Assembly (NCBI GenBank): GCA_965637545.1
Contig: OZ281497.1
Coordinates: forward strand, 6,572,001-6,636,000
Origin: Phallusia mammillata
Taxonomy: Eukaryota
Reading direction: 5' to 3'
Length of the DNA stretch: 64,000 nucleotides
The notes under the pieces were generated by a model that was not told the origin of the DNA, ran no database searches, and was given only the letters and a program-made list of their open reading frames with translations. A program made the translations under genes and the position numbers. This document shows, piece after piece, positions 3,055 to 29,215 of the stretch (within the stretch, counting starts at the first letter, position 1; each line of letters starts with the position of its first letter).

Positions 3055-4575
<1,521 letters not shown>

Positions 4576-5548: not shown

Positions 5549-6691
5549 ATGGGAGACAGTTACGGAAATAGCGTAAGTACTTTTGTAAATGTCAAACAAA
5601 ACAATATATTGTGCAATCGTGAAAACCTTGTATTATCTGTGATAAAAAACATGTTTATGGTGTTTATAATTATAAGGCATTGGTCAAATGCAAAATCATG
5701 TAAAACATGTTTTAATTGTTTCAGGAATCGGTGGAACACGCATGGGCCTATAAAGCAATGGGTGAGGCAGACACACATTACAATGTATGTTAGATTTTGT
5801 TTCAAAATCTTTGCAATCCTTTAAATAAACCATTTGTGGGATTGTATGGTGCTTTTGACTGTCTAAAATTATTGGTGCACATTGCACAACTACAAATGCA
5901 TTTATAATTATACACCTTTAAACTTGCTGTAATTTTAACTTAATCTAATGTGTGTTGTTTGCAGATAATAACATCAGTTGATCCAGATTTTCTTACACTA
6001 TCTGAACAAGATGATAAAATATATGAAGAATTCCGGTCCAGTTTTCCAGACTTCGACATAAACATGATCAATGAAGATGAAATGAAAAGTGCTGAAGGAA
6101 AAAAGGTGCATTTAACAATGTTTCAAATAAACCATATTATCTAGTCTAGGCCTTTCAATTGTTTTAATGTGAAAGAGCATTCGCTTAAAAACGTTTGCAA
6201 TGGACTTGTTAACATATACATAACAAGACTTTGTTTTAGAAATGGAGAACATTTTGCAACAAGTTTGATTCCATGCAAAATTTTAATTATGGTTGTTTAG
6301 TGAGAATCAATCCCATGGAAGATTACAATGCAAACAACTGCACTTTTGGCAAGTAAAACACATGAATGTTGTTTCAGTTACCTTATTTTCCTGACTGTTT
6401 GCATTTGTTCACTATCAAGCTTGTACTAAACAAAATACATGTATTTGTTACTAACACAGTATTTAGCAAATATATATTAAATGTACATAAGTCTAATTAC
6501 AATTATTGTTTTGTTTAAAAACAGCTACGCACATCCAATACCTAGCCATAGAAATTGCCCGCAACCGTGAAGGAATAACAAAGAAGCTCTATTGCAAAGC
6601 TTTGGCTGAGCGGCGTGCAAGACGGTTGGCAGGAGTAACCAGTATGGAAAAACTTAAAAGCATGGCAGGAGAAATAACTGGAGCGAAGTAG
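5549..6691 (+). CDS. PBDC1: PBDC1 (polysaccharide biosynthesis domain-containing 1 / CXorf26 family), 166 aa; exons 5549-5572, 5725-5784, 5965-6105, 6240-6348, 6525-6691
   Basis: Spliced product MGDSYGNS|ESVEHAWAYKAMGEADTHYN|IITSVDPDFLTLSEQDDKIYEEFRSSF...KSAEGKK|KWRTFCNKF...NFNYGCLVRI...NCTF|ATHIQYLAIEIARNREG matches PBDC1 (SYGND..AWA..YY.LISSVDP..DDQIYSEFR..KWRPFC..RIQFFAIEIARNREG). Intron 4 must be GC-AG. Confidence 0.92.
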
Positions 6692-6854
6692 CTCTGTTGA
6701 AAACTTGGTAGCCACAGGATTGGCTAAATGTTACCATCCAAACTGAGGGTAAATGGAGCTAGGGTTCCTGTTTTCCAATCGGGGAAAAATTGCCTTTTAA
6801 AAATGCATTTTACTGGATTTAATTGAAAGAACTCAATAGGTTTATCAGTACAGG

Positions 6855-7190
6855 CAGGGTTGCCATACCGTCCTTATTTCTAAGATTTGTCCTTATTTTG
6901 GGGGGTTATGTCTTAGAAAATGTCGTAGTCCTTATTTCTAAGAAATGTCCTTATTTTCATCAATTACACGTCAAATCCTTGCTACAAGTAAAAGTAAACC
7001 TAGACCTGTTGTGAGATGCACGAAGTACTTTCTATGAACAAGGAGTTAATGGAACAGCTTGTTTCCGACCAAAATATTGCCAATGATATGTGTAAGTGCA
7101 AAGATTTGTTCAAAACGTTTGTTTCGTGTCATATGAAAATTTAATTTTTCGGTTGTCCTTATTTTTGGTTTCAAATCGATGGCAACCCTG
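6855..7190. mobile_element. Non-autonomous hAT MITE, 336 bp
   Basis: TIRs CAGGGTTGCCAT / ATGGCAACCCTG. Perfect 8-bp TSD AGTACAGG (6847-6854 and 7191-7198). Internal repeated GTCCTTATTT motifs. Confidence 0.93.
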
Positions 7191-7546
7191 AGTACAGGTC
7201 TACTTTTGTTGAATCAAACTATGTATGCAATTTGTTGCTTTTGTTGTGGTTAGTACTGTATATTGTAGAGTCCCCCTGCAGTGAGGTAATCGAAAATGAT
7301 AAGCGCACTGTTGACCTAATAAATCAACATCTACATGTTTGCAGCGTAAAAAAAAACAAAAAAATGTCAGAACGTCCATCTCCTTGTTGTACACACTTCG
7401 CATATAGGAGTCATATTAAAACACTCTTTTCAATCAGCACTATACGTTCTTGAAACTGTGTTGCTACAGCTGTTTCACCAGACCGCTAACACTTCAAGAT
7501 GCGTAGCTTGAACCAAAATGTGTTTTATGAATTTGAGTGCTATGGC

Positions 7547-7741
7547 CAGTGCTGGATTAAGGGTCTGCTGGCCTGTAGGCACATTTTATAAGTGGCCCGA
7601 AAATCAGGGTTGCCAACTAAAAAAATAGAATTATCAGTGTTGCCAAATCATTGTCACAAAGATCGTTGTTGCAAAGTGGCCTGGATTTTTGACTGGCCTG
7701 TAGGCACGTGTCTAGTTTGCCTAATGGTTAATCCGGCACTG
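7547..7741. mobile_element. Non-autonomous hAT MITE, 195 bp
   Basis: TIRs CAGTGCTGGATTAA / TTAATCCGGCACTG. TSD GCTATGGC / GATATGGC (7 of 8). Subterminal TGGCCTGTAGGCAC occurs twice. Confidence 0.85.
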
Positions 7742-8128
7742 GATATGGCTGGTTGTAGAGACTTTAAACGTTAAAAGACACAGTTATTGACTCGCCCAAG
7801 CCACATTAAACGAAAAAGCGGGATGTAGATTGTTTATCCAAGCACGGTTTGCCCAAAAACCATTCTATTGGAAAAAACGACTCACGTATAACAATACGTG
7901 CATCATTTACTTTTGTTTACGCAGCGTTTTGCAACAGGCCAAATTCCACGCGAGCGCATATGATCTTCAGCTAATGTTCATAACTTACAGTCTAGTCATA
8001 AACCTTTCAATCCGATTTCCTAATATAAAAAGGGGAGTAACAGACGAGCCTGTCTCGCGTTTTCCAAGTATTACGAGGTGTGATACACGAGTGAATGACT
8101 CTTATTGGCATTTAGTTGGCAGTAGCAG

Positions 8129-9679
8129 ATGTACAACATTATGTCCAGCAGCAAGGAACAATCTTCTGATAAAAAATCGTTGTGCGAACCTCAAACTTCG
8201 AAATTGCACCAGGGCTGGCCAGTTTTTAACCCAGGCGCCCAGTTAAAGTTTCCAAACATACAGAAGAAAAATAATCAAAAGAAATTGCAAAGACATGTTT
8301 CAGAAGGCAAGCTCCGAAGGTAACGTATTAGTCTAAATTAAATTGATCGTGAATTGTTCGTGTTTAGAGGACACGGCATTGACAATCCTAATGAAATCTT
8401 CATGAAATGAGTTCATGCACTAATCGAAGACACTTTCAGTCGATTTTAAAAATAAAAGGCATCTTGAAGATTTTAACATACAAATAATGCAAAAAATGAA
8501 CGCATTGTTTCACTTCACAAGAACTGACTGTATATTTTTGGGACTATTTAGAACTAAATATTCTCTGCGACAAACTGTATTATACTAAACATAAAACGGA
8601 GCAGTACACACAAGGTTAAGATTTTCTGCTTAGGGCTTTCAATATGTAATATGTTTGTTCATTGTTAGTTGCCCTTCCAGCAAAAGAACTAGCCGCACAT
8701 CAAACCTCGACAAAGGGAGGTCGGCTTCGGAATCCGCTTTTCAACATGAAGACAACCAACCACTGATTAGCAAGTAAGATATGAATTCAGAAAACAGACA
8801 TTTATGATCCCTCAAAGTTCATGTTGATCAGACGTTTAAAGCTTGCGGCTCACTAACATAAACACATTGCTGAAAGAAACTCCATAAAGGTTGTGAAAAG
8901 AAATAATTTGCAGTTTTAATGTCGATGCGAATGATTCTGGTAAAAATAAGGTTTAGGCAAAGTCACGTACAATTGAAACGCATTTCACCATTAAACAGAA
9001 ACGCATGAGACTCTGGCAAAACGCATTTTGCGAACCACTAAAAACTCTCTCGATGTCGAACAGAGTGCCACCGTACAGTACACTGTCTTGAAAAGCTTTG
9101 CTTTAGGTCTAAATAGCCTTACTGTTCATAACCGTATTAAACGTTCGGATCTTTCAACCTTAGTACCTTACATTAAAGTTAAACGAATGTTACATCCAGG
9201 TACTTTAAACTAATATTAAAGTGAACGAAACACGGTCATCGCTACGTTAAACATTGTATCGTACTGATACTAAACATTGATAAACAGTCATTTTGGTGAT
9301 ATCATAAGATTTTTAATGCCATACGGCTACTTAATTGTTGTTCCGAAATCACCTTTAAGTAGCGGTATTTGTTGTTTTATCGCACCACACTGTCAAATCT
9401 ACCGTCATATCAATAGAAACTACAACCTTAAACTCTTTATCAAGGGATTTCAAGGAAAGCATTATCGAGGAAGATCCAGCAGAAAATGCCAAAAACACTT
9501 TGCCGCCAATGGTCCTTCCATCTCTGTTCAACACCAAGCCCTTCAACTTCCAGAAAATTAACGCCGGAAAGCAACGACAGCCATCGCTTGACCCGTTTCA
9601 CTTCAGCAACAAAAAAGCAATAAGAAGACGCACAGAGATAGAGAAGAAAAACATATCCCGGCAAACTTCACACGATTAA
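8129..9679 (+). CDS. Uncharacterised basic, Ser/Lys/Arg-rich protein, ~168-172 aa; exons 8129-8319, 8681-8773, 9445-9679
   Basis: Three stop-free segments joined by canonical phase-2 introns (AG|GTAACG...TTCCAG|C and AA|GTAAGA...ATCAAG|G). Product: MSSSKEQSSDKKSLCEPQTSKLHQGWPVFNPGAQLKFPNIQKKNNQKKLQRHVSEGKLRSKRTSRTSNLDKGRSASESAFQHEDNQPLISKDFKESIIEEDPAENAKNTLPPMVLPSLFNTKPFNFQKINAGKQRQPSLDPFHFSNKKAIRRRTEIEKKNISRQTSHD*. No family recognised. Confidence 0.7.
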
Positions 9680-11459
9680 ACAATTTGTAACACATATCTT
9701 TGTAGTAATCTTGGAACTTCATCAAAGACAACGTCAATATTACCGTAGGCCTAGTCTTTTTTATCCAAGTGTGAATAGCGGATAAATCACAATTTTGCTG
9801 CTCAAATATTGGGCACTGTAGTTTAAATTGAGTATCGTTTGTTATACACTGAATTTATTTTGTTTTCACATATATATAGTGAAAACATTTTTCTGTAACT
9901 TGGACAAAATTTGTTTTGTAACCACCCCAAAACTACTACGAATAATTTCTGCCTTGGCATGAGTGCATTAATTTGTTATAACTTAACGTTTTACAGTCAC
10001 ACTGTATCAATATACAATGTTTATACCACCCCTTATTAAAAATGCAGTCTCTTCTGAGCAGTTGCAATTGAAATTTCACTGCCTATACATTCATGTTAGA
10101 TATTTCGAGTAAATTATACTACAGATTTGTAACAAGCACATGCTGGTATTAAATATTTGTCAATTAGTTCTATGAATAAATATTGGGAAAACTGTTTGTG
10201 TGGTAGTTTATGTACACACTACACACTTATGGTTTGACAAGAAATTATACAAAACGTTTTGATAGAACGGTTATACAAAACTGGTTAATTTAGCAGGTGA
10301 AAGCACAGCATAGCTAGGTTAGAGTTGTTTAAATAATGTGCTGCAAAACTTAAAAAAGGCACACTATCCTTCCTTGGGAGCAAAGGGGGCTACATCCCCA
10401 GACATTTTATCACAACATAAGTATTTCTGCACTTAATTTAAACTTGAAACAAAACTTATGCTATTGCTACATACCATCCTTTGACTTTCACCACTCTCTC
10501 AATACAAATTGTGTTTATATCTGGTGCAACTTTGACGTGTATGAACAATAGATGACATTGTACGGCGTCCTTAGAGTTAGAAATGCAAAGATAGTTACAA
10601 ACCCATGCCAAGATCAAAGTCAACTTCAAGCGATCTTGTCCACACAATCACTGCCGAACTGTTACAAAGTTTGCTGCGGGACAAATTGGCGGTAACTTTT
10701 TGGCCATAGAAATTTACATCAAAATGCAAATATTTTTTTTTAATTTTTACCCTAAAATGTCGTTTTAAACTACAACTTGTTTAAAAATACCTAAAACTAT
10801 TTAAAAAGTACTAAAAATTCTATTTGAACTAATCAAACTATGTTTTTAAAAAAATAAAAATAAAAGATAAATTCTCAATCGTTGTGATTTTTTTCTCGTT
10901 GATTTTCTTTATTTGTTTGGAAAACTTTTGACTTGAGTCATAAAACAAATATTAATTCGGATTTAGATTTTACTTCGAACTATTCAGAGTCTCCTCTTCT
11001 ATCTAAACTCTCTGGTGATTTGGATTTTAGTTTTTGGAAGAGCAATTGTTGACCGAAACGCAGATTTCACAGAGTAATACAAGAATAAAACAGGCCTTTA
11101 AGCCTGGATGCCTATTATGTGGTTTGGTTTTGAAACTTATTGCTTGTATGCAGGCCTTTAATTTTTCCATTGCTCTACGAATTATAATGTGACAAGGGTT
11201 GGATAACGGCCTAAGGAACAGATTTGATCAGAACTAAAAGATTAACCCTATTTCAAAGAAAAAATGGATATTATTATGATTAGAAGTATATACATATATG
11301 CATTGCCCAGGGTAAGACTATTGTGGTTTGAAATTTGTGAAAGTTATATTTTTGATTTTTTTGCAATATAATAACACATTTTTTTCTCTGTTTAGGTTTT
11401 ATTTTGTAGTAAAAATAGCAACTACTATCGTTTAGCAACTTTTGTTTAAACACCCAGTG

Positions 11460-29215
<17,756 letters not shown>

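Follow-up and report, generated by a model that had tools for sequence, protein, structure and literature searches.

A three-exon gene between PBDC1 and tankyrase in Phallusia mammillata, its relationship to an uncharacterised Ciona gene and a possible docking role of its product

Does the interval between the PBDC1 and tankyrase genes of Phallusia mammillata harbour a protein-coding gene of its own and, if so, what kind of protein might it encode? An earlier note had described there an unrecognised gene of three exons for a basic, disordered protein. We analysed this locus in its genomic setting, the window, i.e. the whole stretch of 64,000 nucleotides that corresponds to positions C4:6572001-6636000 of the 240-Mb genome. 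The window consists of N-free eukaryotic DNA of 37% GC.

Gene structure and genomic neighbourhood

The coding exons, the introns and the closest candidate signals are the following:

8024..8030, + strand: TATAAAA, a possible TATA box, read directly ~100 nt upstream of the ATG
8129..8319, + strand: coding exon 1, 63 codons and 2 nt, with donor AAG/GTAACG
8320..8680, + strand: intron 1, 361 nt, phase 2, GT-AG, 32% GC, GTAACG...TTCCAG
8681..8773, + strand: coding exon 2, 93 nt, 31 codons, both borders in phase 2, with donor CAA/GTAAGA (8773/8774)
8774..9444, + strand: intron 2, 671 nt, phase 2, GT-AG, 35% GC, GTAAGA...ATCAAG
9445..9679, + strand: coding exon 3, 1 nt, 77 codons and the TAA stop (9677-9679)
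10175..10180, + strand: AATAAA, a candidate polyadenylation signal, the first after the stop on this strand, a consensus match only

Exon 1 starts with the ATG at 8129, shortly after a stop in the same frame (8123-8125), and contains another ATG in frame at 8141. The acceptors are TTGCCCTTCCAG/C at 8680/8681 for intron 1 and CTCTTTATCAAG/G at 9444/9445 for intron 2, with an alternative acceptor possible for exon 2 at 8669. Once joined, the three exons form an open frame of 519 nt that encodes 172 residues followed by the TAA. With a pI of 10.0, the spliced product is basic; it contains many K, S, N, Q and P residues, and the portion encoded by exon 2 is Ser/Thr/Arg-rich. The GC content of the exons is 40-47%, vs 32-35% for the introns. 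The coordinates, splice sites and phase-2 introns proposed in the earlier note were found as it gave them, and the 172-codon frame was open throughout. The note had also remarked that exon 1 alone appears as an open reading frame, and this agrees with the list of ATG-initiated frames (8129..8323, 64 aa). Both sequence and profile searches found the gene to be single copy in its own genome.

Of the two candidate signals, the TATAAAA is weak evidence, since such heptamers are common in DNA of 37% GC. If the AATAAA were used, the 3' untranslated region would be ~0.5 kb long.

The neighbouring genes were delineated as follows:

5956-6108, 6222-6347 and 6524-6691, + strand: exons of PBDC1 (PF04669), with the profile match in the last exon at 6524-6589 and the stop at 6689-6691
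11460-11589, + strand: exon 1 of tankyrase, with its own ATG at 11460 and a conserved N-terminal block of 10 residues, ending at a GT donor

The ankyrin exons of tankyrase start at ~12470. The position of the gene between PBDC1 and tankyrase was thereby confirmed, with all three on the + strand. The three-exon gene is thus a separate unit, at a distance of 1.4 kb from PBDC1, which has its own stop, and of 1.8 kb from tankyrase, which has its own ATG.

Several other features of this region were noted. The N-terminus of tankyrase is short, with the first ankyrin cluster starting after ~43 residues, and its reading frame shows no extended His/Pro/Ser-rich region like that of vertebrate TNKS1. Intron 1 of tankyrase contains a MITE-like element of ~530 bp (11874-12402) with nested terminal inverted repeats rich in CCGAAT/ATTCGG. 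Its arms are at 11874-11894/12382-12402, 11901-11925/12316-12340 and 11966-11991/12348-12373, and it has an internal perfect hairpin of 22 nt at 11938-11992. The spacer between PBDC1 and the three-exon gene harbours repeated GGGTTGCCA / TGGCAACCC pieces at 6850-7620, including an inverted pair (7180-7205 / 7590-7615) that is 77% complementary; these pieces are probably decayed ends of small transposons. Upstream of PBDC1, an ordinary gene for a WD40 histone-binding protein of the RBBP4/7 type is found on the - strand (3055-4566).

Orthologues in Ciona and in a metagenome

Homology searches were run exon by exon, and the exons were joined only for the frame check, the composition and the motif counts. 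An exhaustive phmmer search of 1.84 billion representative sequences with exon 3 yielded only two proteins. One of them (P0001) is the 74-aa product of a contig from a JGI metagenome, matched with a library-wide E-value of 1.9e-12 and 57% identity. The other (P0002) is a Ciona intestinalis protein of 156 aa, XP_018668426.1, annotated as 'uncharacterized protein LOC100186279 isoform X3'; exon 3 matched its residues 80-141 with a library-wide E-value of 1.7e-4 and 44% identity. Beyond these two proteins, a profile search retrieved the remaining Ciona isoforms and no others. A word-index search with exon 3, using its open frame of 106 aa as the length, gave no match among proteins of 58-185 aa, and the protein of this genome itself was not found in the collections searched.

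Another isoform of the Ciona protein (P0003; UniProt H2XUI4) has 176 aa, a length close to the 172 aa predicted here. BLASTP aligned residues 28-58 of exon 1 with residues 17-47 of this isoform (pairwise E-value 5e-4, 32% identity over 31 residues), and exon 3 aligned with its residues 111-163 (pairwise E-value 7e-9). The two matches are collinear on the Ciona protein. Since the first is short, the support of exon 1 for orthology is moderate. On the basis of these alignments, the gene is the orthologue of the annotated, uncharacterised Ciona gene LOC100186279/H2XUI4, and, within the databases searched, the family appears to be confined to sequences of ascidian type.

The gene had earlier been proposed to be lineage-restricted or fast-evolving, which is in line with matches to Ciona and to one metagenome contig only among the 1.84 billion representatives. 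The same note regarded it as an undescribed gene; in a broad sense this does not hold, because the Ciona orthologue (XP_018668426.1 and its isoforms, H2XUI4) has already been annotated, albeit as uncharacterised, and the gene is therefore not wholly undescribed. A search with its identifiers found no literature on Ciona LOC100186279.

The metagenome contig, JGI24021J15306_10008850 (called L004), is 12.4 kb long. The counterpart of exon 3 is found at positions 10001-10222, followed by a stop, and an AG upstream of it at 9965-9966 is a possible phase-2 acceptor. At the DNA level, the window and the contig align over 48 nt only (window 9581-9628). No match to exon 1 or PBDC1 was found within the 10 kb upstream of the exon 3 counterpart, and exon 2 was likewise not found on this contig. 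A QPWPIL match at L004:7591 was set aside as a chance occurrence, as it has no ATG and runs into a stop. Scanning metagenomes with P0001 retrieved this single contig, and scanning them with the family profile gave no match. Because L004 carries a clear orthologue of a gene that appears ascidian-restricted, its DNA is probably of tunicate rather than microbial origin.

We then considered exon 2, for which no sequence match was found in Ciona. The only difference between the Ciona isoforms X4 (P0004) and P0003 is that X4 lacks 23 Ser/Thr/Lys-rich residues at the place equivalent to exon 2, which indicates that the middle segment is a skippable cassette in Ciona. These 23 residues and exon 2 have no common sequence, and the exon borders in Ciona were deduced from the isoforms. 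In Phallusia, skipping of exon 2 would keep the frame, since this exon is 93 nt long and has the same phase on both sides; the resulting product would have ~141 aa. Between exons 1 and 3 (8320-9444), the 8681-8773 segment, or its variant starting from the 8669 acceptor, is the sole in-frame open cassette that has GTAAGA as donor together with an acceptor rich in pyrimidines. By analogy with Ciona, exon 2 is probably a skippable cassette, its model being derived only from the splice signals, the open frame and this analogy. Among the other Ciona isoforms, X2 (P0006) has the same alternative first exon as X3 and then continues in a different frame, with loss of the conserved core described below. 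Rather than a functional variant, X2 would seem to be an out-of-frame splice form or an artefact of the annotation.

Conserved blocks, predicted disorder and alternative explanations

Three features of the predicted protein emerged from the alignments and the structural models:

8210..8302, + strand: conserved N-terminal block, residues 28-58, WP[VI]...IQ[KR]..NQ[KR].L...[VM]S, from BLASTP with the Ciona protein P0003
9500..9604, + strand: conserved 35-residue core, LPPM.LP-x5-K.F.F.KI-x7-P.LDPF[HF][FY], from invariant alignment columns
9608..9670, + strand: predicted basic C-terminal helix, exon 3 residues 55-75, from AlphaFold2 (pLDDT of the block 74-82)

The alignment of exon 3 has 18-19 invariant columns. 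Between this genome and Ciona, 19 of the 35 core residues are identical (54%), vs 3/18 in the upstream flank and 8/24 in the downstream flank (17-33%). Two Ciona records are identical at 34 of the 35 core positions (97%), vs 47/56 upstream and 27/38 downstream (71-84%), and the core of the metagenome copy shares 23 of 35 residues with that of this genome. Thus, the identity of the core is well above that of its flanks, which bears out the earlier suggestion of a conserved linear motif in the aromatic/proline block. To our knowledge, none of the PIP-box, LIR, RVxF, PxIxIT, ABBA, DEF, EVH1 and SH3 motifs fits the core in all three orthologues. The core contains a bare DPF, the AP-2 ear motif, which is too degenerate to count.

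The basophilic motifs listed in the earlier note (RHVS, KRTS, RTSRTS, RSAS, RQPS and RQTS) are all present in the translation. The RHVS site of exon 1 lies inside the N-terminal block and is aligned with KRMS in Ciona. The region of the C-terminal helix carries an RRR-T/S basophilic site and an NLS-like cluster, and its R61 and E66 residues are invariant. In total, five R..[ST] sites were observed vs 1.6 expected from composition shuffles, a modest, approximately threefold excess (P ~0.01). The kinase-type motifs on which the idea of a phosphoregulated protein was founded are thus present, and phosphoregulation itself is suggested at the motif level only.

Searches of Pfam with each exon and orthologue yielded no match, nor did those of PDB sequences at an E-value of 10, which agrees with the earlier statement that the protein belongs to no recognised family. 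No paralogue was detected in the genome itself. In the ESM Atlas, the Ciona protein is modelled with a pLDDT of 0.54 and a pTM of 0.18. An AlphaFold2 model of exon 3 based on a five-row alignment has a pLDDT of 70 and a pTM of 0.25, with a single helix (residues 55-75) and the core as coil. The protein is thus predicted to be devoid of a globular fold.

We considered whether the three segments might represent a chance run of open frames in non-coding DNA, or a non-coding transcript, with no protein made. For this, 300 random sequences of 1.9 kb were generated with a first-order model of the local non-coding DNA, and the longest ATG-to-stop chain with at most two introns (GTRA...Y-rich-AG) was scored under lenient splice rules. 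The median length was 95 codons, and chains of at least 172 codons were obtained in 3 of the 300 sequences (1%); ~1 such chain is expected by chance per 64-kb window, counting two strands. As the chain alone is near chance level, the significance of the three-exon gene comes from homology. The lack of conservation of exon 2 might also speak for a chance run. In contrast, exon 3 matches two independent proteins in a library-wide search, exon 1 aligns with the Ciona one with the order kept, conservation peaks in a discrete core and stops at the shared stop region, and the GC content of the exons exceeds that of the introns. We thus hold a chance run to be extremely improbable. Alternatively, the exons might belong to a neighbour, as alternative 3' exons of PBDC1 or upstream exons of tankyrase, or form the middle cistron of a trans-spliced operon. 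The three genes are all on the + strand within 6 kb, the ATG at 8129 is immediately preceded by an AG, as at trans-splice acceptors, and the Ciona orthologue has alternative first exons. However, PBDC1 terminates at a stop of its own (6691), and tankyrase starts at a separate ATG (11460) with its conserved N-terminal block. The frame of the three-exon gene starts at yet another ATG, downstream of an in-frame stop, and ends at a TAA of its own. In Ciona, the orthologue is an independent protein of 176 aa, and the gaps of 1.4 and 1.8 kb far exceed the spacers of Ciona operons, which are near zero. We therefore regard a shared transcription unit as very unlikely, and the sequence evidence indicates that the three-exon gene is real, separate and small.

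The product of this gene might yet be a highly diverged member of a known family, for example a CDK inhibitor of the CIP/KIP type, a PCNA-binding protein with a PIP box or a ciliary microtubule inner protein. Its size, charge and disorder are typical of such proteins. The FDF and LDPFFY pieces are reminiscent of WNFDF and LPEFYY in p27, and RQPSLDPFHFSNKK of the PIP box of p21 with its basic tail; we take these to be points in favour of such a kinship. However, the CDI domain (RxLF ... WNFDF ... PLxGxYxW) is absent, and no match to the CDI profile (PF02234) was obtained even at an E-value of 10. The true CDI gene of this genome is on another contig (C7:4168576), and hhalign of the profile of the present family against that gene gave a probability of 0.1%; kinship with CDK inhibitors was therefore rejected. 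The PIP-box consensus is Q-x-x-[ILM]-x-x-[FY]-[FY], and a Pro at position 6 is disfavoured in the canonical motif. The corresponding region reads QPSLDPFH, TPSLDPFH and KPVLDPFF in the three lineages, so that position 1 varies (Q, T or K), as does position 8 (H, H or F), and a Pro occupies position 6 in all of them; of the motif, only L4 and F7 are kept. As the motif positions change across the three lineages, this candidate was also discarded. Finally, the language-model features of the ESM Atlas placed CIMIP4/TEX33 as a neighbour of the Ciona protein with a score of 0.78, which is within the range reached by shuffled sequences and below the reliable range. This score is the sole link to the ciliary or testis-specific role put forward in the earlier note, and Pfam does not confirm it: neither the Ciona protein nor the pieces from the window match the TEX33 family (PF15400). 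A scan of the genome with the TEX33 profile gave no match at any locus, which makes this negative result a weak one. CIMIP4/TEX33 kinship was rejected accordingly, and membership of any of these three families is unlikely.

Proposed role and comparison with related proteins

Overall, we consider it likely that this locus is a single-copy, three-exon orthologue of Ciona LOC100186279 that encodes a basic protein of ~172 aa without a fold and with a putative docking or regulatory role. We infer its expression in Phallusia, its phosphorylation, its partner and its cellular role. The protein would be non-enzymatic. Its 35-residue core (LPPMxLP, KxFxFxKI, PxLDPF) might use its prolines and aromatic side chains to dock onto a folded partner, in the manner of short linear motifs, and the conserved N-terminal block would provide a second contact. 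Phosphorylation of the basophilic Ser/Thr sites next to the two blocks (RHVS/KRMS in exon 1 and RRR-T/S after the core) could tune binding or localisation, as could alternative splicing of the variable Ser/Thr-rich cassette.

A bolder reading, which we put forward tentatively and hold to be possible rather than probable, is that the core represents a new class of short linear docking motif. An ascidian-specific orphan protein would then be plugged into a conserved machine, for example a kinase/phosphatase or a trafficking module, with the skippable phospho-cassette setting the output. If true, the protein would be a lineage-born regulator of an old pathway. Otherwise, this is an ordinary fast-evolving orphan gene for a disordered protein, which opens no long-standing question. 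The gain is a correctly spliced gene model for this genome, tied to an annotated but unstudied Ciona gene. In addition, the constrained 35 residues of the family are now defined, and they offer a peptide handle for pull-downs on an ascidian-restricted orphan.

The closest known system is Ciona LOC100186279 with its isoforms X1-X4. The two proteins are similar in length (176 vs 172 aa) and both are predicted to be basic, disordered and domain-free. They share an N-terminal WP...IQ..NQ..L...S block followed, in the same order, by a C-terminal LPPM...KxFxFxKI...LDPF core, and both have a Ser/Thr-rich middle segment at the same position, which is skippable in Ciona. In contrast, their identity is low, at 32% over 31 residues in exon 1 and ~40% in exon 3, with none in exon 2. 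The tail of the Ciona protein is ~15 residues longer, and the Ciona gene has an annotated alternative first exon.

The product of the metagenome contig resembles exon 3 more closely, at the identity of 57% given above; the two share the core and the FSN-K-A-x-RRR sequence that continues it, and the stop follows at a comparable distance. It differs from the gene described here in that its last exon alone is recognisable. The protein is also similar to the CIP/KIP CDK inhibitors in that it is small, basic and disordered, and its mode of action, with a few aromatic/proline contact motifs and tuning by phosphorylation, would be similar to theirs, a resemblance limited to this general style. It differs from them by the absence of the CDI domain (Pfam PF02234) that defines that family.
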